A DNA stretch of 64,000 nucleotides from the IMG/VR virus record IMGVR_UViG_3300042350_004528, positions 186,001 through 250,000 of that record; one strand, given 5' to 3'. Under the pieces are notes generated by a model. That model was not told the DNA's origin and searched no databases. It saw nothing but the letters and a program-made list of their open reading frames with translations. Numbering within the stretch: position 1 is the first letter of the stretch; every line of letters begins with the position of its first letter. Of this stretch, positions 7,906 to 52,139 are shown piece by piece. Made by a program: the position numbers and the translations under genes.

Positions 7906-8045
7906 TTTGTTTGTTTTTGTTGATACAAAGATAAATGAAATAAATTTAACTTGCAAATTTCAGGGATCTAAGTTATCCACATTGTTATAAACAAAAAAGG
8001 GTGGGGATTTCCCCCACCCAATCATCAAATAAACAAACAAGCAAT

Positions 8046-9907: not shown

Positions 9908-10038
9908 ATTGTTTGTTTGTTTTGTTGATACAAAGATAAACAAAATAAATTTAACTTGCAAACTTTATCACAAAAAAAAGATAAAAAAAACTTACATTAA
10001 AGTTTGCACATTAAAAAAAATACATTTACCTTTGTATT

Positions 10039-10150
10039 GTCCAATTAAGGAAGGGCGGGCACTCAAAAGGTGGCTGGGGTGTTCTAAGGGAACCTGCCCT
10101 TTACTCTCGTATTATGTTAAATAAAAAAAAAGGGGATTGCTCCCCTTTTC
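10039..10150 (+). ncRNA. Putative structured small RNA 2 (three-way junction)
   Basis: The only + array promoter in the - block (TTTG 10003, TACCTTTG 10027-10034); stem AAGGGCGGG(10051-59)/CCUGCCCUU(10093-101); internal GCACUC/GGGUGU and GUUC/GAAC hairpins; ends at bidirectional terminator ~10127-10150. Confidence 0.65.
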
Positions 10151-13171: not shown

Positions 13172-13294
13172 ATTGTTTTGTTTTTTGATATTGCAAATGT
13201 AAGTGTAATAAATTTAACTCGCAAATTTTAACACAAAAAAAGGGGGAAATTTCTTTCCACCCTCTTTTCTTTATCAAATAAACAAACAAAATCC

Positions 13295-15280: not shown

Positions 15281-15452
15281 AAAGAATTATTTTTTGTTTT
15301 TGATTGGTGCAAATATGAGTGTAATTTTTTTAACTCGCAAATTTTATCACAAAAAAATTTAAAAAACTTTTCAAACCTGGTGGATCCATAAAAAGAAAGG
15401 GGCAATGTTTCCACCGCCCCCTATTGTTGTAATCAAAAAACGCAACAATATA

Positions 15453-20258: not shown

Positions 20259-20405
20259 GTCTTTGTGTGATGTTTTGTTTTGATGATGAAGAGGAGACCT
20301 AGTGTCTCCTTTTCTGATTATACCAGGATCAACAGCAAAAAAAGTTGATTTCAGATTTGCACATTAAATTTAATTCATTTATATTTGCATTCAAAACAAA
20401 ACGAA

Positions 20406-21860: not shown

Positions 21861-22484
21861 ATGCACAAAGGAGTAATCTTATTAGTAAAAGCGGATGACC
21901 GCGATGACGCCATTGGCCAAGCCAACGAGTTTCTTGACCACTATGGGGATGGCGATGTATGGGATTGGTTCGTAATCGGTGGCCGTTGGAGCGGTAACCT
22001 GAACACCCTATCGAAAACTTTCTACGAGAAAGCAAAGGTTCTTTTCGAACAAGCATATCCAAATGAGGATAGCCCATTCTTGTCAACCAAAATGGTTGAG
22101 GAGCAAGCACAGGGTTTGCAAGAGATTTGGGAAAGCATTGGCGGGAAAGGTCAGAACCCATATTCTCGCAGCAGTTATATCAGTGACGGATTTGAGGATG
22201 ATTGTCTCCCGTTGACTGATTGCATTCCCGTCATTCAGGATTGGAAGAAAGATATGGTGGCGGAGGCTGAAACCATTTGGAATAAAATGATTGAGGCCAA
22301 GAAAGATAGTGCGGACAAGTACGATATGTCAGGGTACTACGCAGGTATCTATCGTGACTTAAAGTATGATAATTTCTCTTTCGAGAGTAATGTCTACGAT
22401 GTCGTCAATCACACGAACGACCCCTCGCAGGCTTTGGAGAACCCCGAGCAGTGGTGGGCGGTTCAAATTGATATGCACAATTAA
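21861..22484 (+). CDS. Phage hypothetical protein, 207 aa
   Basis: WDWFVIGGRWSG..IDMHN. Confidence 0.87.
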   Translation: MHKGVILLVKADDRDDAIGQANEFLDHYGDGDVWDWFVIGGRWSGNLNTLSKTFYEKAKVLFEQAYPNEDSPFLSTKMVEEQAQGLQEIWESIGGKGQNPYSRSSYISDGFEDDCLPLTDCIPVIQDWKKDMVAEAETIWNKMIEAKKDSADKYDMSGYYAGIYRDLKYDNFSFESNVYDVVNHTNDPSQALENPEQWWAVQIDMHN

Positions 22485-23649: not shown

Positions 23650-23763
23650 ATTGGGTTTTTAGGTTGGAGCCTCCTGATCAATTCAGGGGGCTTTTTTTTT
23701 CTTAAAAAATTTGCATATTAAATTTATTTCATTTATCTTTGCATTCATAAAATCAAAAACAAA

Positions 23764-24342
23764 ATGAATATTTTACCAAAATCAATTACTGACCGAGTGT
23801 CAATCAAGAATGTGAAAGAAAACTTCGGACACGACTTGGGTGGTTTCTTCTGCGACATCTACTTCGACAACAAGAAAGTAGGTTACCTGAACAATGATGG
23901 TTGGGGTGGTTGCCCTGACATTCGTACCTATGGTTTCGATGCAAAGCACAAAGCGATGATGAAATCATTTGAGGACTTCCTGACCGAGCAGAACTTCGCC
24001 CAGTTTGTTGCTGATGATTACAACAAACCGCACCCGCAAATGCCCAATGGTAAGAATGATTGGGTTGCTGATGATTTCAGGTTTGACAGCCAAGTTGAAT
24101 TCCTTTGTGAACGCCTGAACTTTATGAAAAGTATTGAACGCCAAACAAAGAAAGCAATCCTTTATGGTAACCCTCGTTCAACCAATTACAAGATAGTATC
24201 TTGGAAAGGTGCAAAGACACTTGAAGATGTTGTGAAGAGTATCGGTAATGCTCGTTTCAAGGTTGTTGTTGATGGTATCAAAGCCAAACTTGTTGAGGGG
24301 GAAATGATTTACAACACAAACCTCGAAAAGTTTTTGCAATAA
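23764..24342 (+). CDS. Hypothetical protein, 192 aa
   Basis: NDGWGG motif. Confidence 0.87.
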   Translation: MNILPKSITDRVSIKNVKENFGHDLGGFFCDIYFDNKKVGYLNNDGWGGCPDIRTYGFDAKHKAMMKSFEDFLTEQNFAQFVADDYNKPHPQMPNGKNDWVADDFRFDSQVEFLCERLNFMKSIERQTKKAILYGNPRSTNYKIVSWKGAKTLEDVVKSIGNARFKVVVDGIKAKLVEGEMIYNTNLEKFLQ

Positions 24343-25936: not shown

Positions 25937-26037
25937 CTCACAATACACTTGAAAGAAAGGGGGAAGAAATTCCCTCTTTTTTTTTGCACATTAAATTTAA
26001 TTTACTTATCTTTGTTATCGAAATCAAAAACAATAAT

Positions 26038-26607
26038 ATGAAGTTACTTAATTTTGTGATGGTCGCCAAACACCTGACAGGTGACAGCGAAGTTTATTTC
26101 TTTCCTACAAAGGAGGAAGCAAGAACATTCTACAACAACAGAGTTAAACCGCTGTTGGATATTTGTATGAAGAACGAATTGGAGGAAGATGAGGCGTACT
26201 CATTCGGACAAACCAAAGATTGTGTTCGTTTCGATTGTGGTTACGATGAGGAACTTGATGCGATGCTTAACGAGTGTAATCATTACTATCGTGTGGACAG
26301 CGTTGAAGTTCCTGAAAATGTTACACACTATGTGGCTGACTTTTCCGAGTGGGTTGATGAGAGTGTTATCGAGTTCCACACCGAACAACAGGCAAAGGAA
26401 GTTTGGAACGATAAGATTGATGAGGAAATCAGGTTGGCTTCCGAGTATCATGGGATTGAGATTAGCAGACATCACCAAGAAACTTGGGAAGATAAATCAG
26501 GTATGACCTTGTTTCAGGAAACACATTACAGCGATATGTATTCCGATGCTTACTTTGGTCATTCAATGGATATGACTTGGACATTCAGGATTGGACAAAT
26601 AAATTAA
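26038..26607 (+). CDS. Hypothetical protein, 189 aa
   Basis: Start corrected to MKLLN. Confidence 0.83.
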   Translation: MKLLNFVMVAKHLTGDSEVYFFPTKEEARTFYNNRVKPLLDICMKNELEEDEAYSFGQTKDCVRFDCGYDEELDAMLNECNHYYRVDSVEVPENVTHYVADFSEWVDESVIEFHTEQQAKEVWNDKIDEEIRLASEYHGIEISRHHQETWEDKSGMTLFQETHYSDMYSDAYFGHSMDMTWTFRIGQIN

Positions 26608-27379: not shown

Positions 27380-27435
27380 AAAAAAACGGCTCCATTTCTG
27401 GAACCGTCTCTTCACCACTAAATCAAAAACAAAAA

Positions 27436-27702
27436 TCAATACTGGTAGTATGTGTATTCAATTGTGTCCCCCACCCTGTAACGGGCATGTTGAGGATCAA
27501 CTGTAACTGGAGCTGTGCTGTCCCAGAATTCATATCGGTAGCGCTTCTTGTAATTCAGTGTTGTTGGATCGTACTGTTCGATCGTGTCAACTTTCTTAAT
27601 CACATGTGGCACCACATGAATTGACTTCGGTGGTCTCTGGACACACCCTGTCACCAGGACAGTGAATACAAATATTAGTTTACGCACCTTTGGTAAATAC
27701 AT
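27436..27702 (-). CDS. Putative lipoprotein (start uncertain)
   Basis: LIFVFTVLVTGC lipobox. Confidence 0.65.
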   Translation of the reverse strand: MYLPKVRKLIFVFTVLVTGCVQRPPKSIHVVPHVIKKVDTIEQYDPTTLNYKKRYRYEFWDSTAPVTVDPQHARYRVGDTIEYTYYQY

Positions 27703-27913
27703 CTGGGTTTTCAAAATCAGTTTCAGTATCCAGAAACATGAATGAATCCTCCAACTCCTCATCGGTGAGTTTAACATCTTCCGACAAAGAATTCAGAAAG
27801 TCCATTGCTTCCCGTTTGCTGTTGAAATACTTGTAGTCTGTGTTGTCCTCATTCATAAGGTACTCCAAACCATTTAACGATATGCCCTCAATGGGTCTTC
27901 CAATTATTATCAT
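27680..27913 (-). CDS. Hypothetical protein, 77 aa
   Basis: GRPIEGISLNGLEYL; leaderless-type start. Confidence 0.82.
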   Translation of the reverse strand: MIIIGRPIEGISLNGLEYLMNEDNTDYKYFNSKREAMDFLNSLSEDVKLTDEELEDSFMFLDTETDFENPDVFTKGA

Positions 27914-27991: not shown

Positions 27992-28837
27992 TTATTCCCA
28001 AGGTGTATCAAAGTTATCGAATGGGTTTTCTGGGAAGCAAGAGTTCTCATCATTCCATTCTTCTTCCGAAATTACATTTCCGTCCTCACCAACATAAACT
28101 CTTTGTTCAACATTGTAGTTATATACAACGCCATCCAAAACATATTCTGGTTCACCCTCCGCTAACATAAGTTCACCATCCTCGCTGTAAGCACAACCCG
28201 CGAACCAGTTTCCAGTTTCCATAAACACCAGTTTGAAGTTCAAGTTCGGAAACATTTTGATAACTTTTCCCAACCAGTTGATTGGTGGCGACCAGGCGGA
28301 GTTGAAGTTAATTGTAATATAGTTTTCGTTATCTGTATCGAAACCCATTTCCTCTGACGAGCAATCCCACTTTGTTCCCCAGTTCATAACATTCCAGTCG
28401 TACCAGTTGTCAGTCCCATACTCTTCAATAAGAGCCTCTCGCTTCTCTTCTGTACCATTGGCACATTCAATTAGTTCTGGAATTTCAATTGGTATCTTTG
28501 CTTCATTCAATTGGTTGTTGATGAAGTCCCTGTCGGTTTTGTCTGTGGTCTCCAGAAGTTTTTTCTCCAGATCAGCGATCAACTCTTGTTGTTTCTCGAT
28601 ACGATTTTTTGCGTGGTTCACATCCCACTCGTTCACCCATTCACAATCACGAGGTGGTGATATGGTTCTGGAAAGTGGTTCTGGTGTCGGTAAGTAGTTC
28701 GACATTCTCCAGACAAGTTCTGTTTCACCTGTTTTGCTGTAACGCACAGGTTCTTCGGTAATTCCCATTGCAAGGAATTGTTTGAATTCTTTGGTATCAC
28801 CCGATACCTCTAAACGATTTTCGCACCAGTTTGGCAT
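27992..28837 (-). CDS. YubB/DUF1281 ferredoxin-like domain protein
   Basis: MPNWCEN, WYDW..NWGTKW, FNSAWSPP. Confidence 0.82.
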   Translation of the reverse strand: MPNWCENRLEVSGDTKEFKQFLAMGITEEPVRYSKTGETELVWRMSNYLPTPEPLSRTISPPRDCEWVNEWDVNHAKNRIEKQQELIADLEKKLLETTDKTDRDFINNQLNEAKIPIEIPELIECANGTEEKREALIEEYGTDNWYDWNVMNWGTKWDCSSEEMGFDTDNENYITINFNSAWSPPINWLGKVIKMFPNLNFKLVFMETGNWFAGCAYSEDGELMLAEGEPEYVLDGVVYNYNVEQRVYVGEDGNVISEEEWNDENSCFPENPFDNFDTPWE

Positions 28838-28979
28838 AGTATATTGTTTTTGATTTCGAGAGCAAATATACACCATATATTTTTAACTCGCAAACTTTAT
28901 CACAAAAAACTTTTTTCATTTTTATTTGCACATTAAATTTATTGCACTTATCTTTGTGTCGAAATCAAAAATAAAAATC

Positions 28980-29723
28980 ATGTTTAATCTAGGGTACACG
29001 TACAAGAAGCCTACCACACTGTTTGGTACGCAGAATGCAAAGACAAAGAAAGGTGAAAAACTGGGGTATACAACCTATATCCTGTATATGTCACCAGAAA
29101 AACAAAACACGCTTGGCAAGAACATTTGCCCGAAAGCCACAGCAGGCTGTTCGAAGTCATGTCTCTTCACAGCGGGTCGTGGCAAGTTTAGCAATGTCAT
29201 GAAAGGTCGTCTGAATAAGACTGAATACTTTCTTCGTGACAAGGTGAACTTCATGGACGATGTTGTTAAGGAAATTAAAAAGGGTATTAAAAAACATGGT
29301 GCGGGTGCAATGTGCGTTCGTCTCAATGGTACCTCTGATATTCCTTACGAGAACATTCCAGTGGGTGGTTTTAAAAATGTCATGGAAATGTTTCCTGATG
29401 TGCAATTTTACGATTACACAAAGATCTATTCAAGGTTGACAAAGCAATTGCCTGCGAACTATCACCTTACCTTTTCCAGGGCGGAGACAGAGGACAACCA
29501 ACGCGAAGCGGACAAAGCACTCGCACTTGGTTTCAATGTCGCTGTTGTTTTCGCTGTTAAGGACGAGACAGAACTTCCCGCTGAATACAACAATGCAAAG
29601 GTTATCAATGGTGACGAGCACGATCTTACTTTCTTACATGGCAATGGTGTTGTCGTGGGGTTGAAAGCAAAGGGTGAAGCAAAGAAAGATGATACAGGTT
29701 TCGTAGTAAGGGGTTGTAACTAA
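28980..29723 (+). CDS. Gp88-like phage protein (Cys cluster, radical-SAM-like)
   Basis: CPKATAGCSKSCL, RLNGTSD, FYDYTK, NYHLTFS, GLKAKG. Confidence 0.78.
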   Translation: MFNLGYTYKKPTTLFGTQNAKTKKGEKLGYTTYILYMSPEKQNTLGKNICPKATAGCSKSCLFTAGRGKFSNVMKGRLNKTEYFLRDKVNFMDDVVKEIKKGIKKHGAGAMCVRLNGTSDIPYENIPVGGFKNVMEMFPDVQFYDYTKIYSRLTKQLPANYHLTFSRAETEDNQREADKALALGFNVAVVFAVKDETELPAEYNNAKVINGDEHDLTFLHGNGVVVGLKAKGEAKKDDTGFVVRGCN

Positions 29724-29784
29724 CCCCTTATTTTTTTTTGCATTCAGACTTGCAAGTTAAATTAAATTCATATACCTTTGTCAT

Positions 29785-30102
29785 ATGAAAGCAAAACAAA
29801 ACAATTATCCAAAGTTTATCATCCGTTGGAACGGTCGATTCCATAAGGGTCTGATAACCGAAGACTTCGTCTTCTACTGTAACTACCAGGAAGGAGATGA
29901 TAACGGCAATGTTGAGATGTATCGCAGGGTTGAATCTAACCCGCATGACAGGGACAACAGCGGGCTAGAATTGGTATCGAACAATTACTTTGCTAGCGTT
30001 GGTCTCTTCGAAGCGCTCGAGGCGGGCGTCTGGGAATACATCTCACCAACCATGAAACTGAATTATAAACTAGCAAAAGAAGCGGGACAATTCGATGAGT
30101 AA
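29785..30102 (+). CDS. Hypothetical protein, 105 aa
   Basis: Leaderless-type start. Confidence 0.8.
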   Translation: MKAKQNNYPKFIIRWNGRFHKGLITEDFVFYCNYQEGDDNGNVEMYRRVESNPHDRDNSGLELVSNNYFASVGLFEALEAGVWEYISPTMKLNYKLAKEAGQFDE

Positions 30103-30406
30103 GAAAGAAAGAAAAATATACGAGACCTCTGTAATATACAGAGGGTACCAGACATTTAAACTGTGCTGGGCCACCTCATATGCTGAAGCTGCCAGGATCT
30201 TGGATGTGGCCCCTAGTTACCTTAAGAATTACGGCCTGTCTTATAAACGCGATCGGGATTTTGACTTCGAGGGTTGTTATGGGTATATCGATTCAGGTGA
30301 GATCATCTTTGGTGAACCAGGACGACCTGATCTGATGAGAAAACTTATGCCATGGGCGGAGTTGACGGAGATCGTTGATACTTATATTAAAGAGAAATAC
30401 GAATGA
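30095..30406 (+). CDS. Hypothetical protein, 103 aa
   Basis: Coupled ORF. Confidence 0.75.
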   Translation: MSKKERKIYETSVIYRGYQTFKLCWATSYAEAARILDVAPSYLKNYGLSYKRDRDFDFEGCYGYIDSGEIIFGEPGRPDLMRKLMPWAELTEIVDTYIKEKYE

Positions 30407-30768
30407 GACCAGAATTCAAGATATACAGGAATCTACACAGAGACTGTTTCAGTGTGATGAGATGGAACCAGGAGAAGAGAGGGTACCGTCTGTATCAGCA
30501 TGTCAAGGATCTAGAAGCTTACGGCGTAACGTTCAGGGTATCTCAGGCTGGACGGGCCAGGGTTCTGGAGACGAAGCAAAAGAATGTACATGCATTCGTA
30601 TGCTGCCAAGAATTCAAGCTTGCTTCTGGGGCCGCGAACCTGGGTGAGGAGATCTACTACAATCCATACAAGATGGAAACGTTCAGGATCAAGAGCTCGG
30701 ACGAATCGATTCTGAATGCAGATTCGGTTATCATGACGAATAATAAATGTTATTTAAATGTGATCTGA
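30403..30768 (+). CDS. Phage hypothetical protein, 121 aa
   Basis: YRNLH..FSV, KNVHAFV, YNPY. Confidence 0.82.
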   Translation: MRPEFKIYRNLHRDCFSVMRWNQEKRGYRLYQHVKDLEAYGVTFRVSQAGRARVLETKQKNVHAFVCCQEFKLASGAANLGEEIYYNPYKMETFRIKSSDESILNADSVIMTNNKCYLNVI

Positions 30769-30772
30769 ATTC

Positions 30773-31324
30773 ATGGGCGGAGATGAGAGAAGCGCGATAG
30801 AAGTGATCGCTGAATTCACGTCACCATTTGAGGATTCACTTAACGTGTTAATCCTAGGTGATCATATAGATGATCTTGAGGCTGCTGAAGTAAAGGCGGC
30901 GTTCGATCGAACCAGGAATGAATTCCTGAGTCTGCCATCGGTGGACGAGGAGAAGATGGCCCCGATCAAATATATTAAAATTAATACATCCGAATTTTTC
31001 AGGGGGAAGATCAGTAATAAAATTAAGAAGGAACCCTGTGTTGTATATCTGGATCACGAGCTCAGCAAAAATGCTTTGAACATCCTCACCAATAATAACA
31101 GTGAGGTGGATGATCTGGAGGAAATGCTTCTGGAGAAATATCTTTTCGGGATCAACCAGGAAAAATTTATTCTGGATCTCACCAGCTGTCTGGATGAAAG
31201 GATCGAACTTCTCATGAGTGCCATGGACGCCAGAGCTGGGGAATTCAATTATGTTCTGGTGGAAAAGTATCTGGCGATCTGGATATATGCGCTTGACGAA
31301 TTCGCCCCATTTCAGTTCGATTAA
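30773..31324 (+). CDS. Hypothetical protein, 183 aa
   Basis: ORF track. Confidence 0.75.
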   Translation: MGGDERSAIEVIAEFTSPFEDSLNVLILGDHIDDLEAAEVKAAFDRTRNEFLSLPSVDEEKMAPIKYIKINTSEFFRGKISNKIKKEPCVVYLDHELSKNALNILTNNNSEVDDLEEMLLEKYLFGINQEKFILDLTSCLDERIELLMSAMDARAGEFNYVLVEKYLAIWIYALDEFAPFQFD

Positions 31325-31386
31325 AAAAAAGATAAAAAAAGTTTCAAAAAAACTTGCATAATAAAAAAAGTTGTATTACATTTGTA

Positions 31387-31470
31387 GTCCTTAAGAGTTC
31401 AGGCCTGGGAGGCAACCCTTTCTCTCTGTTTTGTTTTTGATTTCAAAAAGTCCTCCCAGGTTCTGTTCTC
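31387..31470 (+). ncRNA. Putative small RNA 4 (hairpin with anti-leader loop)
   Basis: Array-type promoter 31353-31384 with no ORF; CCUGGGAGG(31404-12)/CCUCCCAGG(31452-60) stem; loop UUUUGUUUUUGAUUUC. Confidence 0.62.
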
Positions 31471-31609
31471 GAATTCAAGTTTAAGTTTCTACTAGAATTC
31501 AACCCCGTATAATTTTTAGAATTCATATTGCTGGATCTTCCAGAATTCATATCCGTAACTTTTTTAGAATTCATATATAAATAAAAAAGGTGAACCCTTT
31601 TAGAATTCA
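31471..31609. repeat. GAATTCA repeats at 24-bp period
   Basis: GAATTCA at 31471, 31495, 31519, 31543, 31567, then 31603. Confidence 0.9.
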
Positions 31610-31634
31610 CCTTTCAGTTTTTTTATGTATTCAC

Positions 31635-31892
31635 TTATTCGTCATCCGCTTCTTTCTTGCGTCTGGTCTTTCTGGTTGGTAAACCTCTTTTCTCACGTAT
31701 CCTGTCCCTGAGTTCCATCACCTTCAGGATGGCTGTGATCACCGCGATGAAAAGACCGAGGATCACACCGATCAATTGTAGGAGATCTGTTGCACTCATG
31801 GTGATTGATAACATTGATGATAATATTCCGTATTCAGGTTTTTTAGTTAGTGTATCCGTTAATTGGGTGATGAGTGTGTCCTTCATTTTCAA
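31635..31892 (-). CDS. Holin-like small membrane protein
   Basis: TM helix followed by very basic tail; ACTATTTAT upstream. Confidence 0.5.
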   Translation of the reverse strand: MKMKDTLITQLTDTLTKKPEYGILSSMLSITMSATDLLQLIGVILGLFIAVITAILKVMELRDRIREKRGLPTRKTRRKKEADDE

Positions 31893-32037
31893 TACTGTTT
31901 TTGTTTATTTTTTTGTATACAAATAAATAGTATGAATGAATAGAAAACGCCCGTTGTTAACTCGAATACATTATTTTTTTTTAAAAAAATTTGCACATTA
32001 AATTTTAATGTGTTATCTTTGATTAAATTAAAATAAT

Positions 32038-32331
32038 ATGAATGCAATAAATACAGCCTATACATTGGGTTTGGTCGCCATGTATTTTATCATGGGCGGA
32101 GAATTCACATTCTGGGTGTTCATGACCTCGGTCTTGATCGCACTGATTCCACTGACAACTTCGAACCTGTTATTCGCGACCCCGATCGTGGTTCTGATCT
32201 GGTGTTTCTTTTTCACCAGCAGTACAGTTTACGATTCCGACTTCGCGTGGTTATGCATCCTGTATGCACCCTTCCATTACACCTCATTCATATCCCATGT
32301 CATAGACGCCATCGAGGGCATTTTCGATTAA
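32038..32331 (+). CDS. Multi-TM membrane protein, 97 aa
   Basis: Hydrophobic; last array promoter 31990-32021. Confidence 0.78.
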   Translation: MNAINTAYTLGLVAMYFIMGGEFTFWVFMTSVLIALIPLTTSNLLFATPIVVLIWCFFFTSSTVYDSDFAWLCILYAPFHYTSFISHVIDAIEGIFD

Positions 32332-32409
32332 ATTTACGCCGTTTTTTTAATAATTTAAAAAAAATATATCGAAAACTGTCGAGGGGCTCAAATTTTTTTC
32401 ACTTGTTCC

Positions 32410-32462
32410 TGGGTGGGAAATGGGATTTTGTGGGGGTAAGTGGGGGATTGTGGGAAATAGTG
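32410..32462 (+). repeat. TGGG repeats at 10-bp period
   Basis: TGGG at 32421, 32431, 32441, 32451, plus 32410 and 32414. Confidence 0.85.
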
Positions 32463-32608
32463 TAAGTAACTGATTATCAGGTAATTCAGTGACTGTCAGT
32501 GAGTTATCTGAATGCACTCATTTTCAGTCAGTTGCGGGTATGTGTGTTTCTCGGCAGAATTCACATGGGATCCTGGGCAATATAATGTAAAATGAATGCA
32601 TTTTAAGG

Positions 32609-32905
32609 CTATTTAAGCGCACTTCGTGCTGCTGTGGTAGCCTCTATCATTTTATTGTATTCAATCCACTGAAGGTATGTTTTCTCCTCGAATACTCTGG
32701 TGTATTTATTACAGTTTTTCACTCCGTACTTCCATACAACCTTCATGATATTTTCATCCTCAGCCAGAGAGCTGTACCATGTGAGTATTCTTTTTTTACC
32801 CTTCATGTATACAAACTCATCTCCTTCTTTCAGACTGTGAATTCCATTCTCAAGCTCCTGAAGAATGAATACACCTTTCATATGATTCACTCTTATTGTA
32901 TTCAC
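32609..32905 (-). CDS. Hypothetical protein, 98 aa
   Basis: Last gene of the - strand block. Confidence 0.75.
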   Translation of the reverse strand: MNTIRVNHMKGVFILQELENGIHSLKEGDEFVYMKGKKRILTWYSSLAEDENIMKVVWKYGVKNCNKYTRVFEEKTYLQWIEYNKMIEATTAARSALK

Positions 32906-33132
32906 TTCTTCTGTACGATATCAATATATTCTTTTAATCTATTCGCAGCCCTCTGACTCGGTTTTCCATTCTCAACCGTGAACAAATACTTCTCAAAGAA
33001 ATACCTCAGCGCTTCCACGTCCGATAGTTTTGCATCTGGCAATGTTTCCTTGTTCGATTCCTTACATTCTCCTGTGCAAGATTCCCCACAACTGTAAAGA
33101 CATCCTTGCGTTCCTGAATAACCTATACCCAT
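32902..33132 (-). CDS. Hypothetical protein with Cys-rich N-terminus
   Basis: CLYSCGESCTGEC. Confidence 0.75.
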   Translation of the reverse strand: MGIGYSGTQGCLYSCGESCTGECKESNKETLPDAKLSDVEALRYFFEKYLFTVENGKPSQRAANRLKEYIDIVQKK

Positions 33133-33272
33133 ATCTTATTATTTTACATTGGATGTATTTCATTTATTATAGCTTTAACAAGTAATCCATAAGTTATAAT
33201 TAATGATATAACTATAATTATCTCAAATAGATTTTGCCACTTTTTTGGTGTTTTTCTTACCCACATAATTTT

Positions 33273-33551
33273 TTAATATTCGGTTATTGTATAATTGTTG
33301 CAGACGATGCGTTTAATTCCAAATCCATCCTTAAAGGTAATGCACCCGCTCTTTTCATCCCTGGTATATTCTCTGGTGAAATATGTCTCCATGGTTTGAA
33401 AATTGTTCACGCTTACCTGATACAAGGTTTCGTTTGACTTGACCCCCTTGTAAATAAAATATGCTCTGGAGCCCACCAAAGCAATCACGGCGATGATCGT
33501 GAATACCATAATCATCTTAATCAACGAATGTGTTCTGTCGTATGTTCTCAT
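33273..33551 (-). CDS. Membrane-anchored hypothetical protein
   Basis: N-terminal TM. Confidence 0.75.
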   Translation of the reverse strand: MRTYDRTHSLIKMIMVFTIIAVIALVGSRAYFIYKGVKSNETLYQVSVNNFQTMETYFTREYTRDEKSGCITFKDGFGIKRIVCNNYTITEY

Positions 33552-33568
33552 TGTTTTTATTTATTTTT

Positions 33569-33865
33569 TTAATCCATTGGAATCTCAAGAACTCTCCCCC
33601 CAGAAATATCAACCCAGGTTTTGCATACAATCAGATCCAATCCAATCATATAACCCCTGACATGATTATCTTTGCTGAACACCTTCTTCGCCACCCATGG
33701 GCCAGTTGGTTTTCCAACCGCAAGATATGGTTTTACCCAGATACCCAGTTCATATTCCTTTCTGAGTTTCCATACGGTGTAATTATCCATACCCTTGTTC
33801 TTCTCCCACCTGTGTCTCAACACAAAGGTCATTCTAAACCACTTTGTTCTTATTCTTCCAATCAT
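33569..33865 (-). CDS. Hypothetical protein, 98 aa
   Basis: ORF track. Confidence 0.75.
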   Translation of the reverse strand: MIGRIRTKWFRMTFVLRHRWEKNKGMDNYTVWKLRKEYELGIWVKPYLAVGKPTGPWVAKKVFSKDNHVRGYMIGLDLIVCKTWVDISGGRVLEIPMD

Positions 33866-33868
33866 CCT

Positions 33869-34117
33869 TTATTGTTTCATTCCATACACACCCATCACCA
33901 ACAACATCAAGATCAACCCAGCCGTCACCAACATTGATAATACGGATATCTTCTCGCTATCCTCAACTTGTTGTGGTGTTCTTCCTTGGTACTCCACGGT
34001 GTTATCCTTTGGTTTATTATTGTCAACCAGACTGCGAACCTTTTCACCCAATTCGGAATCATTTGGTGTCTCCCACACCATCTCCGTTAATTTCTTCATT
34101 AATTCTTGATTATCCAT
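33869..34117 (-). CDS. Membrane-anchored hypothetical protein
   Basis: PNDSELGEKVR; C-terminal TM. Confidence 0.78.
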   Translation of the reverse strand: MDNQELMKKLTEMVWETPNDSELGEKVRSLVDNNKPKDNTVEYQGRTPQQVEDSEKISVLSMLVTAGLILMLLVMGVYGMKQ

Positions 34118-36106: not shown

Positions 36107-36343
36107 TTATTTCGTTAATTTTATAAAGATTCCAGCTGGCCCATGTGATACATGATAACCACAACATCTATTGTCCAAAGTCATACCATACGATTTAAGA
36201 CGAAATATTATCGCGGACTCAGCCTCACCATAAAAAATAGCGTGAACCGTGCTATCAGCGTAATCAATTGAAACGCCAATTATTTTATTTATTGCCCAAG
36301 ATGGGTTTATGTCCAACTCTTCAACTGGTATGTGTACTAACAT
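36107..36343 (-). CDS. Hypothetical protein, 78 aa
   Basis: ORF track. Confidence 0.7.
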   Translation of the reverse strand: MLVHIPVEELDINPSWAINKIIGVSIDYADSTVHAIFYGEAESAIIFRLKSYGMTLDNRCCGYHVSHGPAGIFIKLTK

Positions 36344-37167
36344 TGTATTCTTTTTAATACGTCTAATATTCTTGAGTATGCTTCAACACCAACTGGTATC
36401 GACATTAATGAGACCAAAAAGTTACTGATGTATGAGTACATTGCGATGATATCCCCTTGAGATAACTTGTCAGATGTCTTGATGAAGACAATCAAAGCTG
36501 TCACAAGAAATGTATATTTAACCGCATTCACCCAGAACCAATTCTTTCCTTGTAATGTTGAACCGTATATCCATAACTTTCTTCTTCTGTTAAAGAAACT
36601 TGTTATCTCATCCTTATTGGAACGATTGATAACATCAACTTTTTTCTCATATTGATTGTTCCCAACAACAGTTGCTTGTTTTATCTTCTTGTAAAACTTA
36701 AACACAATAAACATAATTGGGAACACACAACCCAACACAATGAAACCTGTTATCAAACTTCCCCTCATCACAAAAACCAAACTACCCAGAACCGTGACAA
36801 TAACGGAAATGTAATAATGAACGTAACTCTCGAGAACATCCACAATCTGGTGAGCCATATCTGTCCTGGCTACCTTAGATGAGTTATCAACATCGGTCTT
36901 ATGTATAAACTCCATCACGATGTTGTTATATATCTTTGTGTATACCTTTGTGTCATAAACCATTCTCTTGTATATGAACATGGTTGATCCAGCGTAAACC
37001 AGAACCAAACCAATCAACCAATTCCAGTTACCAACCAACAAACCATCAATCGTCTTTCCAAGAAAATAGGGTTGCAATAAAAGCAAACCCTCGGCAATTA
37101 ACATGTAAGTGTATATTAATAATAACTCATACTTATATTGCTTAAATATATTAATCAGATGTTTCAT
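36337..37167 (-). CDS. ABC transporter six-TM domain protein (no ATPase domain)
   Basis: PYFLGKTIDGLL, RMVYDTKVY, six hydrophobic segments. Confidence 0.75.
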   Translation of the reverse strand: MKHLINIFKQYKYELLLIYTYMLIAEGLLLLQPYFLGKTIDGLLVGNWNWLIGLVLVYAGSTMFIYKRMVYDTKVYTKIYNNIVMEFIHKTDVDNSSKVARTDMAHQIVDVLESYVHYYISVIVTVLGSLVFVMRGSLITGFIVLGCVFPIMFIVFKFYKKIKQATVVGNNQYEKKVDVINRSNKDEITSFFNRRRKLWIYGSTLQGKNWFWVNAVKYTFLVTALIVFIKTSDKLSQGDIIAMYSYISNFLVSLMSIPVGVEAYSRILDVLKRIQC

Positions 37168-40758: not shown

Positions 40759-42210
40759 TTAAATTTTAATCTTTATGTTTTCGATAATTAAATCACCAGT
40801 GTGAATACCGTTATGTTTATAAATTTCAACATGGTATCTGTTAGATGAGTTGACCTCAAATTCAAATTGCATTGTTGGTCTACCGTCAGCGTTGAGTGTT
40901 CTACAACAACCCTTTTCACAAGACTCACCAGGCATTTTATGATCGGCTCCGAAGAAAGACATATAACCCGCGAAGCTCTCAACCATATTCGGGTGTGCTG
41001 TTGTTAATTTATTTCGATTAACGTAAACCTCATAGACACCTTTAGGTATCTTCGTGAATGAAACGGTTAATACTAATTTAACTCTATTTGGCGCACCTAG
41101 CTGGCCACTTGTTGGCGTAACCTGTGTGACAGCATCTGTGATTTGACCATTAATTGGTATGCTGAAATTATTGCTATGTAAAACATTGTTGTATGCTCTA
41201 GCCATCATCGGTTGATCAGCTTTTTCATATACCTCAACATCATCATAATCATAATCAAGTTTGTATATTATCTTTATCACATCTTCCATTGTATAGGTAA
41301 CTTTCTTACCATTCTCATCGAAGAAAACATAAGACCAGTCAGCTGATTTTAACATCTCCAATGTAACTTTCTCCCCATTCGGAGAATTAGTCCATTGCTG
41401 CCATAGTCTATCAATGTTTGAGTGATGTGTCCAGAAAACTGGATCAAACCCAGCTGTCGGAACCCAACCCATCAACCCTGTCTCACTAATTTTACCAGTG
41501 ATTGGGTTGTTGAACAACTTACCAGTTTGTACATTACCAGCGCCGATGTAATCGTGCATCGCACCATGTGGGGCATTGTTAATCTGCGAGTTAAACATTT
41601 CGTATGAGGTGTAACTCATTAATTTATCTGTCTCCAAAGCTCTTTGGATTTCACCTGCAATAGGATAACCATAGTTCAAGCTATCAAATCTACAACGTTC
41701 ATATAGGGATGATTTCGGATCTCTGAATTTTTCTTGTAAAAATTTGTCGTAGTCAAAATTATTTGTGTAGCCCCAATAAGGTAATGCGAAATCTTTATAT
41801 CCAGACAATTTTCTAACTATCTTTTCTAAATGGTGAATGTATAATCTATGCCAAACCAAGAAATGAATTTTTTCTTTACCACTTGGTGTATGTGTACAAT
41901 TATCCCAAGCTTCTTTTAAATCGGCTGGGGTCTTATAGCTTGGGCACAGTGGGTTATATAAGATTGTGTCGGGAACCCAATGAATTGCACCTTGATAATA
42001 CCAACTCAATGGGTTATCACAAGGCATATTACGCATAATTTTAAAGGCTTTGTCCATGGCTTCAACGTCCATTTGTGCCTCTGGTGTGTGAATTTCTTTT
42101 CGGAGATATCGTTTTCCAACAACATCTCCAACGCTTTCGGTTCTGTCTTTACATGATATTAGCCATAATAGGCCAAACATCAAAATGAATAGTATTAATA
42201 TTTTTTTCAT
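40759..42210 (-). CDS. Tyrosinase / polyphenol oxidase (type-3 copper), lipoprotein
   Basis: CuA AIHW..CTH..FLVWHRLY; LPYW; CuB PHGAMH..DPVFWTHHSNIDRLW; LISC lipobox. Confidence 0.93.
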   Translation of the reverse strand: MKKILILFILMFGLLWLISCKDRTESVGDVVGKRYLRKEIHTPEAQMDVEAMDKAFKIMRNMPCDNPLSWYYQGAIHWVPDTILYNPLCPSYKTPADLKEAWDNCTHTPSGKEKIHFLVWHRLYIHHLEKIVRKLSGYKDFALPYWGYTNNFDYDKFLQEKFRDPKSSLYERCRFDSLNYGYPIAGEIQRALETDKLMSYTSYEMFNSQINNAPHGAMHDYIGAGNVQTGKLFNNPITGKISETGLMGWVPTAGFDPVFWTHHSNIDRLWQQWTNSPNGEKVTLEMLKSADWSYVFFDENGKKVTYTMEDVIKIIYKLDYDYDDVEVYEKADQPMMARAYNNVLHSNNFSIPINGQITDAVTQVTPTSGQLGAPNRVKLVLTVSFTKIPKGVYEVYVNRNKLTTAHPNMVESFAGYMSFFGADHKMPGESCEKGCCRTLNADGRPTMQFEFEVNSSNRYHVEIYKHNGIHTGDLIIENIKIKI

Positions 42211-46099: not shown

Positions 46100-47962
46100 T
46101 TATTTTACCTCGGTTACAGTACCCTGTTCAGATTCTTTTTTCTCTTGGATTTGCTTTAACAATTCCATTCCAAGTAAGCCATTGATTGGGCTACTATCAC
46201 CACTACCTGTGATAAGAATCTCAGGGATGATTTTGATACCATTTGTACCAATCATTTCGGTAACTTTAAGTTTACCAAAGTTTTCAACACCCATAGCTTT
46301 AACTTGCTTTTCGTAAGCCTCAGCAGTTGATTTACCAATCGCGGAAATCTTAGATGCTTCAGCATCACCAGTCAATTTAATCTGCGTAGCATCAGCTTCA
46401 GCGTTCAATTTCTTAGCTTCAGCTTGAGCGGCAGCTTTTAATTTCAAGGCTTGTGCTTCACCCTCAGATTTCTTAACAGCGGCCTCAGCTTCACGTTGAG
46501 AAATCTCAACCGATTGTTGTGCTGACACCATTTGTCCTTGCATATCGGCAAGTGCTTTAGCCGATTCAAGCGTCTTACGTTTATCTTGAGCTTTGCGTTG
46601 AGTGTCAAATGTTACCTCTTCTTCTTGTGCAATCTTACGGTCAGTAAGAGTTTTCATCAGAGAGTCTGGTGGTGTGATGTCACCAATAAGCGTATCAACC
46701 GCATGCACGTTGTATTCTTCAAGAACCGTGCTGATCTTATCTTTAGCAGCATTCTGTCTTTGTTGACGAGTTGATAAGAACGCAATCACATCAGAATCTT
46801 GTGCCGAGTTACGGAAATAGTTACCGATGGTTGGTTCAAGAACTTGTGACACAAGGTTCTGCATTGAGCCGAAACGAGCAATTACTTTAGGCGCTTCGGT
46901 TGATGGGATGTGGATAATCTGTGAAACATCCAAATTGAATGGGAAACCGTCTTGTGAACGTACTGTGATGGTACTCAAGTTCTTATCAAGATTGTGTGAT
47001 TCATTACGAGCATTTGCCCAGTTAAGAACCAAGTTTGTTGTTGGTACTATCTCAATCTTCTGTGTATAAGGATTGATTGCGTATTTACCTGGATCCAATG
47101 GGGTTGCCCACACACCTTTCTGACCTTTTTTAACGATGTTACCGTGTTTAAAATCACTTCCAGTGGTGTCTTCACCATCTTCACCAACATAAGAGATAAC
47201 AACACCAACATGACCGATAGGAATGGATGTCATTTCTTTCTTCTCAACTTCGATTGCCCATGGGTTCAATGAATAAGAACCAGCTTGAATAACTTGGATT
47301 TGTAAACCCCTTTGTCCACCATTAGCCAAAAACTTATCAAAGTCTTGGAAATTATTGTGACCGCTAACCACAGAACCAGCGATTGAACCAATCTCAAGTG
47401 GTGTACCATCAAGTGCTGTAACAACGCCAACCATACCATCTTCAATGTATGTGATGTCAGCGAGGAATATCTCGAATAAATGGGTATTAACACGATACAC
47501 ACCGTTGTTTAAATAACCAACTTGTTTACCACGTTGTCCACCTGTTGATAAAAACGCTCTAGCATCTTGGTAATCATCACAATCAACGTGTCGAGCCAAG
47601 ATAGCACCCTTTGGTAACTGTGCGCCATCTTTAGCTGATAACAAGCCGATCTTACCTTTAGGTATTGTTGTTAAAGGGGCTTGTTCGATTTCGAATTGCC
47701 ATATCCAGTAAGCCCAATATAAACCTGGGGCTAATGTGTCGGCCTGAAAGCCTGGTTCATTGTTTAAGGCGATAATCTTACCATCGGGTAATTGTTTATT
47801 GGGGCCAAAAAGTACAAATTTTTTGGTCACCAAACCAATTTTGTCTTCAGGTATGATAACCATACCAAAGAACACTCGTAGTACGAACTTGTAGAATACT
47901 ACCATGAGGATCGGGATTAAAACCCATGCGTAACCCAATACGCTAGTTAATTGTTCTGTCAT
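46100..47962 (-). CDS. SPFH/band-7 flotillin-like membrane protein, 620 aa
   Basis: N-terminal TM, repeated GQRG..PG.Y units, VRSQDGF SPFH core, Ala/Glu coiled coil. Confidence 0.9.
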   Translation of the reverse strand: MTEQLTSVLGYAWVLIPILMVVFYKFVLRVFFGMVIIPEDKIGLVTKKFVLFGPNKQLPDGKIIALNNEPGFQADTLAPGLYWAYWIWQFEIEQAPLTTIPKGKIGLLSAKDGAQLPKGAILARHVDCDDYQDARAFLSTGGQRGKQVGYLNNGVYRVNTHLFEIFLADITYIEDGMVGVVTALDGTPLEIGSIAGSVVSGHNNFQDFDKFLANGGQRGLQIQVIQAGSYSLNPWAIEVEKKEMTSIPIGHVGVVISYVGEDGEDTTGSDFKHGNIVKKGQKGVWATPLDPGKYAINPYTQKIEIVPTTNLVLNWANARNESHNLDKNLSTITVRSQDGFPFNLDVSQIIHIPSTEAPKVIARFGSMQNLVSQVLEPTIGNYFRNSAQDSDVIAFLSTRQQRQNAAKDKISTVLEEYNVHAVDTLIGDITPPDSLMKTLTDRKIAQEEEVTFDTQRKAQDKRKTLESAKALADMQGQMVSAQQSVEISQREAEAAVKKSEGEAQALKLKAAAQAEAKKLNAEADATQIKLTGDAEASKISAIGKSTAEAYEKQVKAMGVENFGKLKVTEMIGTNGIKIIPEILITGSGDSSPINGLLGMELLKQIQEKKESEQGTVTEVK

Positions 47963-48287: not shown

Positions 48288-49817
48288 TTATAATTTATTT
48301 AAACGTTCACGAATTTCAGTTAATGTTGTTTGGTTGTGGAACTTACCATCTTCATAAATGGTTTGTAAGATTCCAGTTCCCTCTTGCTCCCAAGTACATT
48401 GAGTTAATACCTCATGGTCTTCAGTTACACAGATCAAACCTTTCAAAGATTTCTTGGTACCATCATCAGTTACTGGATCTTTGTAGATGTTGTAACCAAC
48501 CTTTCCTTTTGGAATTAAAGCACTTCCCAAAAGTCCATCGGCTGAAGGTATAGTATCAAACTCCTCAACTTCAAACCAAGCACCTTTGGCTGCGAAACCT
48601 AAAGTGTCACGGGTATTCATTTGGTAAGTAAATGAACCAACACCCAATACAATGTTTGTTGCCGCAAATCCTTTTGCTTCCAATCTCTTGTAGATTTCAA
48701 TTTGACGGTCTAATGTGATTGAATCTCCGTAGATTGCTCCGATGTGTGGGTCAAGAACCTTGTAACCTTGTTCATTGATTGTTCCACCAAAGATGTCCCA
48801 AAGTAATTCTATTACCCCGACTTCAGCAGGTGTTTTATACTCACCAGGCGCATCGGATAATTGTTCTTCTCTACCACAAATAATATCAACTGGATCACCA
48901 GAGTCAGGACGAATTACTAACTTACCGTCACGAGCCATGATAGCTTCTTTGTTTGCTGGTAAGTATTCAGTAATCAACTTCCACAAATCAAATGTGTCAG
49001 ATACAATTGATAGGATTCCATTCGGAAAATCTACCAACCAATCGGCAATCATTTGTTGTTCACCAACAGTAAAGATTTTTGTTGTTGATACAGAGTGTTC
49101 AGATGCGTTAACCGAGTTAATGCACACTTCGTCTTTTGGTTCATTATAGAAATAACGAGCCCCTGGAATACAGATGATTGTATCTGAACCACGGAACGAT
49201 GTTGCATGTCCCATTCCACTAGTCAACATATCCCATGGTGATAAACCACGTGCTGAAAAGTCATGACACATAAAAGGAATTAACCAAGCTGTTGATGGGT
49301 CGGTTTTCATAACCCACTCAACAACATTACGTTTGTATTGCAATGCTATTGTTGCTGATGTGGATGGTTTCCAAGCCAACGAACTGATAATTGTTTCCAA
49401 ATACAATGTCAACCACGCAAACCCATCGACAGTATTGATGAAAGTCATGTGTGGAACATTTGGGTTTGTTTCAATACCTTCAGGTAGTGCTTTAACACGA
49501 ATAGGTAAGTAACCTAATCTGTGTAGTGCAACGAAGTGTGATGCATCGTAATCCATTCCAAGATACAATGACATATCTTTTCCAAAGTTAACCGCAACTT
49601 CCTCGGGTAAACTGAAAAAGTTCTCTTGAAATTCATCATGTAACCATTTAACAACCAATTGTTGTCCGAATGAAACGATTTTTGACACGCCTTTAGGTGC
49701 ATACTTAACACTACGTGGAATCCATGTGCCGTACAAACGGGTGGTTCCAGGAGCTAACATTTTCTTGTGACCGATCTTATATCCGTCAGTGTAAAATAAA
49801 CTTGTTGGTTTGAACAT
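48288..49817 (-). CDS. Nicotinamide phosphoribosyltransferase-like (NadV/Nampt; probable Namat)
   Basis: TDGYKIGH, HDFSARG, ASEHSV, SIVSDTFD, VIRPDSGDP, IYGDSIT, KKSLKG. Confidence 0.92.
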   Translation of the reverse strand: MFKPTSLFYTDGYKIGHKKMLAPGTTRLYGTWIPRSVKYAPKGVSKIVSFGQQLVVKWLHDEFQENFFSLPEEVAVNFGKDMSLYLGMDYDASHFVALHRLGYLPIRVKALPEGIETNPNVPHMTFINTVDGFAWLTLYLETIISSLAWKPSTSATIALQYKRNVVEWVMKTDPSTAWLIPFMCHDFSARGLSPWDMLTSGMGHATSFRGSDTIICIPGARYFYNEPKDEVCINSVNASEHSVSTTKIFTVGEQQMIADWLVDFPNGILSIVSDTFDLWKLITEYLPANKEAIMARDGKLVIRPDSGDPVDIICGREEQLSDAPGEYKTPAEVGVIELLWDIFGGTINEQGYKVLDPHIGAIYGDSITLDRQIEIYKRLEAKGFAATNIVLGVGSFTYQMNTRDTLGFAAKGAWFEVEEFDTIPSADGLLGSALIPKGKVGYNIYKDPVTDDGTKKSLKGLICVTEDHEVLTQCTWEQEGTGILQTIYEDGKFHNQTTLTEIRERLNKL

Positions 49818-52050: not shown

Positions 52051-52065
52051 ATTATTTTCTATTAG

Positions 52066-52139
52066 TGGGCCCTGCTGGGTTCGAACCAGCGACCACCTGA
52101 TTATGAGTCAGACGCTCTAACCGACTGAGCTAAGGGCCC
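52066..52139 (-). tRNA. tRNA-Ile2 (CAT anticodon, lysidine type), CCA not encoded
   Basis: Cloverleaf GGGCCCT..TAGCTCAG..GACTCATAATC..GGTTCGAA..AGGGCCCA; resembles ileX-type rather than Met tRNAs. Confidence 0.88.

Follow-up and report, generated by a model that had tools for sequence, protein, structure and literature searches.

Organization of the locus

The sequence analysed here, referred to below as the window, is a stretch of 64,000 nucleotides from a freshwater phage of Bacteroidota with a genome of roughly 299 kb (IMG/VR record IMGVR_UViG_3300042350_004528; contig of 298,833 bp). It was found identical in four IMG/VR metagenomes and is present completely in at least 17 freshwater or lake DNA runs from many studies, indicating that the phage is widespread in lakes. 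It has no close relative among 50,697 deposited phage genomes: a blastn search of the region against these records found no match, and the only megablast hit of the late region was a NAMPT gene of Tenacibaculum phages.

From position 1 to about 32,000, almost every small gene has its own copy of one promoter, TTGC-N19-TAnnTTTG. There are 60 exact-core copies in the window, located on the minus strand up to about 18,500 and on the plus strand from there to about 32,000. This is the sigma-A consensus of Bacteroidota (-33 TTTG, -7 TAnnTTTG; PMC7366714), and these genes are therefore very probably transcribed early by the host polymerase; we call them early genes on this basis. Eleven genes have TTTG-N4-ATG and look leaderless, which places the transcription start about 5 nt after TTTG. 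Forty-four genes have leaders of only about 12-23 nt, which belong to one A/C-rich family, (A)AAUCAAAAACAAAA..AUG. From about 32,000 onwards, the genes lie on the minus strand in tight operons without this promoter.

One of the 60 promoter copies is followed not by an open reading frame but by a predicted hairpin (Table 1). No ATG occurs between about 31389 and 31624, and no plausible open reading frame was listed there. In this unit, a 9-bp G+C stem, formed by CCTGGGAGG and CCTCCCAGG, encloses a 39-nt loop containing GTTTTGTTTTTGATTTC, and is followed by a repeat region and a terminator, so that the unit has its own promoter and its own terminator. The hairpin and the whole unit are both more stable than expected (fold z = -3.2 and -3.4, respectively). 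The hairpin itself does not have the form of an intrinsic terminator, which requires a short loop and a U-run directly after the stem: its loop is 39 nt long, the stem is followed by UUCUGUUCUCG, and a terminator scan picked only an alternative small inner hairpin at this place, as well as the true terminator at 31585-31615.

Table 1. Features of the small-RNA unit and its predicted targets (window coordinates)
Position	Strand	Feature	Observations
31354..31384	+	Promoter: -33 TTGC (31354-57), 19-nt spacer, -7 TAcaTTTG (31377-84)	Same exact-core frame as 59 other promoters in the window; a promoter in this frame is kept at the same place in all 13 variants from relatives
31389..31403	+	Inferred 5' end (TSS about 31389, give or take 3) and short 5' segment	TSS placed by analogy with the 11 leaderless-looking genes; CAGG 31400-03 pairs with UCUG 31462-65 as an outer helix with one bulged U; pairs at columns 4/70 and 5/69 vary G.U/A-U/G-C
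31404..31412	+	5' arm of the G+C stem (CCUGGGAGG)	Pairs with 31452-31460
31413..31451	+	39-nt loop; conserved core 31426-31445; seed GUUUUGUUUUUGAUUUC at 31428-31444	Unpaired probability 0.76-0.99 for 31414-31433; a weak inner stem joins 31434-39 to 31444-50
31452..31460	+	3' arm of the stem (CCUCCCAGG)	Pairs with 31404-31412
31461..31584	+	Downstream part of the same unit, with six (A)GAATTCA repeats, function unknown	GAATTC at 31471, 31495, 31519, 31543, 31567 and 31603, mostly 24 nt apart; not significantly structured as RNA (z = -0.65); variable copy number in relatives
31585..31624	+	Bidirectional intrinsic terminator, probable 3' end (RNA of about 230 nt)	Stem 31586-94/31606-14, then a U-run on the + strand; conserved in all relatives, including L082
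21840..21863	+	Predicted target: leader and AUG of gene 21861-22484	Exact 15-nt complement at 21843-57; total -15.8 kcal/mol
23746..23766	+	Predicted target: leader and AUG of gene 23764-24342	Exact 15-nt complement at 23750-64, reaching the A of the AUG; -12.9 kcal/mol
28961..28982	+	Predicted target: leader of the GP88-family gene (ATG 28980)	16 bp, including one G.U; -17.1 kcal/mol, the best of all targets
28835..28858	-	Predicted target: leader of the DUF1281_C-domain gene (ATG 28837)	One mismatch at 28842-28856
26019..26040	+	Predicted target: leader of gene 26038-26607	One mismatch at 26021-26035; -14.2 kcal/mol
27388..27435	-	Possible second anti-leader element, resembling a 3'UTR-borne seed	Exact 15-mer UUUUGUUUUUGAUUU after the stop codon of ORF 27436-27777, then a terminator hairpin (27409 to 27388) and a U-run; same layout kept in L033, L027/L028 and L041 with diverged sequence

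The initial annotation had described this locus as an ORF-less hairpin under an array-type promoter, whose loop is antisense to a leader shared by many genes, and every element of that observation was found in the sequence; a small correction is that the 5' arm starts at 31404. It did not mention that the transcript probably runs on for about 160 nt through AGAATTCA repeats to a terminator, that many relatives carry a second seed near the 5' end, that similar anti-leader tracts sit in several early 3'UTRs, or that one relative lacks the module.

Complementarity of the loop to early leaders

The complement of the loop sequence, AAATCAAAAACAAAA, is exact in the first two leaders of Table 1 and has one mismatch in others, including the one at 28962-28976. 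In all, there are 16 sites with at most 2 mismatches, against 3.4 expected, and 0 of 100 shuffles reach 16. A third exact copy, at 27420-27434, is not a leader. The initial annotation had called the match low-complexity and cautioned that chance needed to be excluded. We therefore shuffled the loop 1000 times, keeping its mononucleotide or dinucleotide content. The native loop has at least 10 contiguous Watson-Crick (WC) pairs with 22 of the 44 leaders and at least 12 with 10 of them, with a maximum of 15, whereas the shuffles average 0.33 and 0.99 for the first count and 0.05 and 0.08 for the second, and none of them reaches 22 (p<=0.001). Chance is thus excluded as the source of the match.

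The complementarity is also specific to the early class. None of 39 late genes reaches 10 pairs (Mann-Whitney p = 1.6e-12), although these genes are A-rich upstream as well (A fraction of 0.46, against 0.54 for the early leaders). RNAcofold gave about -1 kcal/mol for every RNA-mRNA interaction, as a loop-to-linear helix counts as a pseudoknot in that model; we therefore combined duplex energies with opening energies. With this correction for accessibility, the mean interaction energy is -9.2 kcal/mol for early leaders, -4.3 for late translation initiation regions (TIRs), and -2.5 for loop-shuffled RNAs, whose best mean is -5.5. The best predicted targets are proteins of unknown function, along with GP88-family and DUF1281_C-domain proteins. 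Most of the loop is predicted to be accessible; however, the duplexes are A-U rich, and 31434-31439 is predicted to be about 80% paired in the weak inner stem. In a scan of both strands of the whole window for sequences antisense to leaders, excluding the trivial opposite strand of each leader, the two strongest sites were this loop and 27418-27435 on the minus strand.

The initial annotation also raised the possibility that host mRNAs are regulated. As A-rich leaders without a Shine-Dalgarno (SD) sequence are general in Bacteroidota, host mRNAs could be the main targets, with the match to the phage's own leaders merely reflecting that these imitate host leaders. In line with this, the same leader-type 18-mer precedes ATGs in unrelated IMG/VR contigs, so the motif is not private to this phage. 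However, the result for the late genes shows that generic A-richness is not enough, and the seed tracks the phage's leader family. We consider host mRNAs unlikely as the main targets, although this reading does not exclude the main explanation.

The position of the predicted duplex bears on the direction of any effect. Pairing covers the very 5' end of many leaders (target nt 1-24), and the RNA has the same promoter class as its targets, so it would be made together with them. In this view, the duplex could shield early mRNAs from 5'-end-dependent decay or sequester them for later use rather than repress them. On the other hand, the duplex reaches the AUG or lies within a few nucleotides of it, inside the 30S footprint, and initiation in Bacteroidia depends on unstructured upstream sequence (PMC6847099). 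A positive or protective effect therefore seems improbable, and it would face the same problem of stoichiometry as repression.

Conservation of the unit among relatives

Homologues of the upstream 183-aa protein (98 to 42% identity) and of a top target gene led to syntenic contigs from many samples, which are designated here by L numbers. Thirteen distinct sequence variants of the unit were recovered, always downstream of the same gene and always with a TTGC-N19-TAnnTTTG promoter. In the loci found through the upstream protein, this protein is 95, 92, 82, 81, about 55 and 42% identical, while L084 and L085 were found through homologues of a target gene. Left out were P0017 (85% clade), for which no DNA was on file, L081, which ends before the locus, and L083, which is rearranged and has no exact-core promoters. 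MAFFT and RNAalifold mis-registered the 7-, 8- and 9-bp stems, and a covariance-model alignment was used instead. A model built on 11 variants finds exactly one copy per phage, including the untrained L084 (E 1e-10) and L085 (E 2e-8), and no second copy in the window.

The stem exists in nine versions of 7-9 bp, all of which pair. One position is A-U in the window and L023, G-C in L033, and G.U in L035 and L026; in the 8-bp lineage, the same three states recur (L027; L039 and L043; L040), and L085 has a further A-U for G-C exchange at another position. Across the 13 variants, 97.7% of cells are paired and three pairs show double-sided changes. The covariation score is 0.283, against 0.204 for shuffles (0/500), and sliding the partner by one column lowers pairing to 64-71%. 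The G.U pairs in L026, L035 and L040 would be C.A mismatches on the other strand, so the plus-strand RNA is the folded molecule. For the same reason, and because there is no minus-strand promoter, we rejected the idea of a minus-strand mimic of the leaders. A reading of the stem as an SD/anti-SD pair (GGAGG/CCUCC) was also dropped, since L033, L039 and others have GGGGG/CCCCC.

Within the loop, CUGUUUUGUUUUUGAUUUCA is identical in 9 of 13 variants and 10 of 13 share UGUUUUGUUUUUGAUU, while the loop segments on both sides differ in sequence and length. A stem conserved without its loop had been named beforehand as a finding that would refute the antisense reading; the loop core was found to be conserved. 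These observations also weigh against a relic, that is, an inverted remnant of a promoter-leader cassette trapped in a hairpin or terminator. The array evolves by cassette duplication, so inverted leader copies could arise, and one clade has lost the module. Nevertheless, the core is 100% conserved across clades whose flanking protein is about 55% identical, adjacent loop bases drift, the stem shows compensatory changes, the promoter is conserved, an independent second seed exists, and no minus-strand promoter lies upstream of the leader-like strand. We regard this reading as very unlikely.

The second seed is also G/U-rich and lies 8-30 nt from the 5' end on the same strand, as AUAAUUGUUUUGGUUUAU in L027/L048, L037 and L084, and as UAUUUGUUUUUGAUUU in L039, L040 and L043. 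It matches the four-A sub-family of leaders. In every clade with enough leaders (L033, L035, L048, L037 and L084), the clade's own RNA matches its own leaders far above shuffles (0/500 each). In phages with seed A, 39 of 81 leaders have at least 10 WC bp to it, whereas in L037 (seed changed) and L082 (module absent) together the figure is 1 of 17; this suggests co-evolution, but it rests on only two independent lineages. The covariation between seed and leaders across clades is mixed, as the seed-by-leader matrix has no clean diagonal. In the L085/L081 phage, both have diverged, their complementarity is weak (8.5 against 6.95 for shuffles, p = 0.016), and it is no better than with foreign RNAs. 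The variant loop of L023 matches the window's leaders worse (8.0 against 11.0), in a comparison that could not use L023's own leaders. L082 lacks the promoter, hairpin and repeats altogether and keeps only the terminator, so the module is dispensable, and it is gained or lost as one block.

An exact stem pattern searched in IMG/VR returned only identical copies of this phage plus chance palindromes. The exact loop-core 18-mer gave 35 hits in IMG/VR, of which only this phage and the L048 clade are real, the rest being chance or antisense to other phages' leaders. The hairpin-plus-loop pattern, searched in 185,579 species genomes, gave one chance hit inside a coding region, so no cellular homologue and no clue to the host were found.

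Transcript evidence and the repeat region

Four RNA-labelled runs were compared with 29000-34000. In a riverine metatranscriptome, the only piece of this 5-kb stretch is a single 177-nt contig at 31405-31581 with 0 mismatches, which lies wholly between the predicted start and the terminator; under uniform placement, a fragment of that size would do so about 1% of the time (55/4824). Two other metatranscriptomes contain only the neighbouring small gene 32038-32331. In a further search, the first run contained 0.77 of the unit's words, and two more RNA runs contained 0.14 and 0.09. The contigs are unstranded, the depth is about 3 (3.3 for the 177-nt contig), the ends are unmapped, and DNA carry-over cannot be excluded, so this evidence is supportive rather than proof. 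It does suggest that the transcript runs through the repeats to the terminator.

The antisense model does not explain these repeats, which make up the 3' two-thirds of the transcript. One alternative is that the RNA is a protein-binding sponge or decoy, in which the (UUUUG)n loop and the AGAAUUCA repeats would be binding sites for a host or phage RNA-binding protein, for example an unknown phage protein or ribosomal protein S1, which prefers U-rich single strands; complementarity to the leaders would then be secondary. The G/U-repeat character of the loop is kept even where the exact seed changes (L037, L085, L039), the transcript carries 4-14 same-orientation GAATTCA repeats, and the repeat region is unstructured, as in sponge RNAs that display motifs. 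However, U-richness alone does not give exact 15-mers or 22 of 44 leaders with at least 10 WC bp, the second seeds are also leader complements, and no candidate protein or known motif was identified. This alternative is unlikely, although it is the strongest of those considered.

Another alternative is a DNA-level element at the point where early plus-strand and opposing minus-strand transcription converge, such as an origin, a packaging site, a partition site, or a transcription or replication barrier, with the promoter serving only to activate it. Six repeats lie at a 24-nt period in one orientation, the array is conserved but variable in number, as iterons are, the promoter, hairpin and repeats are gained or lost as one block, and the site sits at a switch in gene orientation and GC skew. 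The skew turn coincides with the change in gene orientation and is thus uninformative. An iteron-type origin, packaging site or partition site would bind an initiator, terminase or ParB-like protein, with an adjacent cognate gene; the neighbouring proteins have no informative family, which points neither way. The G.U intermediates of the stem, the strand-specific seeds and the upstream promoter point instead to a folded plus-strand RNA, and the precise complementarity to the leaders has no role in this model, which we consider improbable.

Comparison with described regulatory systems

No described RNA family matches the unit. At the gathering score of the Rfam 15 models, including GcvB and phage C4, the only hit in the window is tRNA, and with E up to 10 on 31300-31700 there are only sub-threshold chance hits. 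Among trans-acting sRNAs of Bacteroidota, GibS of Bacteroides thetaiotaomicron (PMC7366714) also has its own sigma-A-type promoter (TAnnTTTG), is non-coding, and uses a long, conserved, single-stranded, A/U-rich-compatible seed that pairs across translation initiation regions, in a phylum without Hfq; it binds its targets with high affinity without a protein in vitro. In contrast, the unit described here has no sequence or Rfam relationship to GibS, is encoded by a virulent-looking jumbo phage rather than a cell, its seed sits in a hairpin loop rather than at the free 5' end (although relatives add a 5' seed), and its predicted targets are dozens of mRNAs sharing one leader rather than a few metabolic genes. 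The G/U-rich R1 region of GcvB in Enterobacteria reportedly targets C/A-rich elements upstream of start codons in many mRNAs (Sharma et al. 2007, Genes Dev). The pairing logic proposed here is the same, with an unstructured G/U-rich seed against an unstructured C/A-rich translation-enhancing leader giving one RNA many targets. However, GcvB is cellular and Hfq-dependent, and its targets share a motif by convergence, whereas the predicted targets here share a leader because they belong to one duplicated promoter-leader cassette family.

The phage immunity RNAs P1/P7 c4 and P4 CI are phage-encoded small RNAs whose hairpin loops carry sequences complementary to leader regions of the phage's own early or lytic transcripts, shutting them off, and they are also a route to superinfection immunity. 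They are processed out of the transcript they control and have one or two target sites in the same operon. The present unit has its own promoter directly upstream and at least 20 dispersed predicted targets, on both strands across about 30 kb, and there is no evidence that this phage is temperate. The proposed job is the same as that of the T4 proteins RegA and RegB (review, PMC3014915), namely class-wide post-transcriptional shut-off of early phage mRNAs through a motif shared by their initiation regions. RegA is a translational repressor and RegB is an endoribonuclease cutting GGAG in early SD regions; here, the recognising molecule would be an RNA and the motif an SD-less A/C-rich leader. 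Finally, lambda OOP and P22 sar are phage-borne base-pairing regulators that act during infection but are encoded opposite their single target, while recently described phage or satellite trans sRNAs (for example, bioRxiv 10.1101/2022.04.08.487710 and 10.1101/2024.10.31.621285) act on a few phage, satellite or host genes in Proteobacteria. None of these is described as targeting a leader common to a whole gene class. The principle of antisense pairing at the initiation region is thus familiar; what is new is the bearer, a Bacteroidota jumbo phage, the predicted target, a leader shared by a whole gene class, and the architecture, with a loop seed, an optional 5' seed and a repeat tail.

Proposed role of the small RNA

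The best explanation is that the unit from about 31389 to about 31620 on the plus strand is the gene of a phage-encoded, trans-acting antisense small RNA, transcribed by host RNA polymerase. The RNA would fold into a stable G+C hairpin displaying a mostly unpaired G/U-rich seed, and the loop would pair with 10-16 nt of the leaders (AAAUCAAAAACAAAA-AUG) of singly transcribed early genes, up to or next to the AUG. Bacteroidia ribosomes ignore SD sequences, and initiation is tuned by mRNA structure and upstream bases (PMC6847099 and PMC7797042). Such a duplex should therefore block 30S binding by occluding the unstructured A-rich landing site. Translation of a large subset of early mRNAs would then fall together, and the mRNAs might be destabilised, while late operons would be untouched. 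Because the RNA should be more stable than the mRNAs, it could work as a delayed shut-off of early expression or as immunity against superinfecting relatives.

What the analysis itself demonstrates is the promoter, the hairpin with its conservation and covariation, the specificity of the complementarity, and the presence of the sequence in an RNA library. Pairing in vivo, repression as the direction of the effect, its timing and its stoichiometry are inferred, and any host target is hypothetical. The stoichiometry is a difficulty in its own right, as one RNA gene faces at least 44 leadered promoters of the same class in this window alone, so that the RNA would need much higher stability or catalytic turnover. 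The interpretation given in the initial annotation, that one sRNA could switch off many early mRNAs or host mRNAs together, is accordingly only partly supported. We are highly confident that this is a real, selected small-RNA gene, but regard it as about equally likely as not that it acts by pairing with early leaders and lowers their translation.

A broader and more tentative view is that a lytic jumbo phage uses RNA rather than protein for class-wide control of its own early genes. One stable small RNA would recognise the leader common to a whole temporal class of dozens of single-gene transcripts, helped by anti-leader tracts carried in the 3'UTRs of some early mRNAs (27418-35, 8027-44, 13276-92, 20271-84), and together they would time the early shut-off or block superinfecting relatives. 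In this picture, the seed and the leader family co-evolve, and the module is gained or lost as a block.

Antisense small RNAs are known from phages, but as regulators of one or two sites, almost all in Proteobacteria, and RNA regulation in Bacteroidota and their viruses is barely charted. Cultured Flavobacterium jumbophages exist (PMC13573597), so the idea is testable. The system would offer a natural, compact tool, with one seed and one leader of about 15 nt, for multiplexed translational control in Flavobacteriia and Bacteroidia, and it offers a clean setting for studying how leader accessibility governs SD-independent initiation. If confirmed, it would show how a phage can switch off many SD-less mRNAs at once, through a leader shared by a whole gene class, without a dedicated protein.

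Accessory genes and promoters of the window

Accessory genes of the window encode an ABC_membrane_3-like protein, a tyrosinase-domain protein and an SPFH/Band 7 protein. A further ORF is partly overlain by a match to a gene annotated as nicotinamide phosphoribosyltransferase (NAMPT), with 75% nucleotide identity to Tenacibaculum phages PTm1/PTm5. NAMPT islands are reported in cultured Flavobacterium jumbophages (PMC13573597). A tRNA-Met (CAT) gene sits inside the late region and is preceded by a promoter-like TTGG-N19-TAtcTTTG, which belongs to a "TTGG" variant class also seen before 47962, 50808, 43013 and 38974.

The 31-nt promoter TTGC-N19-TAnnTTTG is present in 60 exact-core copies, one per small gene, and its spacer is strongly conserved as well. 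Eleven of these genes have TTTG-N4-ATG and probably give rise to leaderless mRNAs, which is an unusually high share. The small gene next to the RNA unit, which has no Pfam family, is the only part of 29000-34000 recovered in two independent metatranscriptomes (contigs 32053-32275 and 32053-32338), and it may be very highly expressed.

Coordinates of additional features in the window and in related phages (L numbers denote loci of relatives)
Locus	Position (strand)	Feature
Window	1-32021	Region of the 60 promoter copies
Window	8027-8044(-), 13276-13292(-), 15430-15445(-), 20271-20284(+)	G/U-rich anti-leader tracts
Window	10004-10150(+), 533-330(-), 3957-3760(-)	Array promoters with no ORF behind them
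L082	2145	Same
L084	52 and 9617	Same
Window	27388-27435(-)	Anti-leader, terminator hairpin and U-run after ORF 27436-27777
Window	31470-31610	(A)GAATTCA repeats
L037	6690-7050	(A)GAATTCA repeats
Window	32038-32331(+)	Small gene next to the RNA unit; promoter 31991-32021
Window	36337-37167(-)	ABC_membrane_3-like protein
Window	40759-42210(-)	Tyrosinase-domain protein
Window	46100-47962(-)	SPFH/Band 7 protein
Window	48288-49817(-)	ORF with NAMPT match at 48867-49206
Window	52065-52139(-)	tRNA-Met (CAT)
L082	18040-18110	Site lacking the promoter-hairpin-repeat module

Repeats and loss of the module in a relative

The (A)GAATTCA repeats all lie in one orientation and are often 24 nt apart, with 6 copies in the window and 4 to about 14 in relatives (L037, L027, L043, L084, L085). 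The last copy forms the 3' arm of the terminator, and the region is unstructured as RNA (z = -0.65). It is possible that the repeats constitute a protein-binding array on either RNA or DNA. The syntenic relative L082 (a 110-kb contig, JGI 3300042969) lacks the whole promoter-hairpin-repeat module and keeps only the terminator, and its leaders are mostly ACAAAUUUAAAACAAUAUG rather than AAAUCAAAAAC.

Anti-leader tracts and further candidate ncRNAs

The exact 15-nt anti-leader UUUUGUUUUUGAUUU lies directly after the stop codon of ORF 27436-27777 and is followed by 12 nt, a terminator hairpin and a U-run, which is the layout of a 3'UTR-derived sRNA. This layout is kept in the relatives L033, L027/L028 and L041, with diverged sequence. 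Similarly, G/U-rich tracts complementary to leaders were found between the stop codon and the terminator hairpin of several other early genes. Among 44 3'UTRs, 4 have at least 12 nt of exact complement to some leader, against 0.81 expected, while the maximum in 100 shuffles is 3.

Further array promoters were found with no ORF behind them. The units at 10004(+) and 533(-) share a GGGCGGGC-containing start, while those at 10004(+) and 3957(-) end in terminators. Homologues of the 10004(+) unit (start UGUCCAAAUGAAGGAAGGGCGG...) recur in L082 and twice in L084. These units, which have no Rfam match, are candidate additional families of phage ncRNAs.
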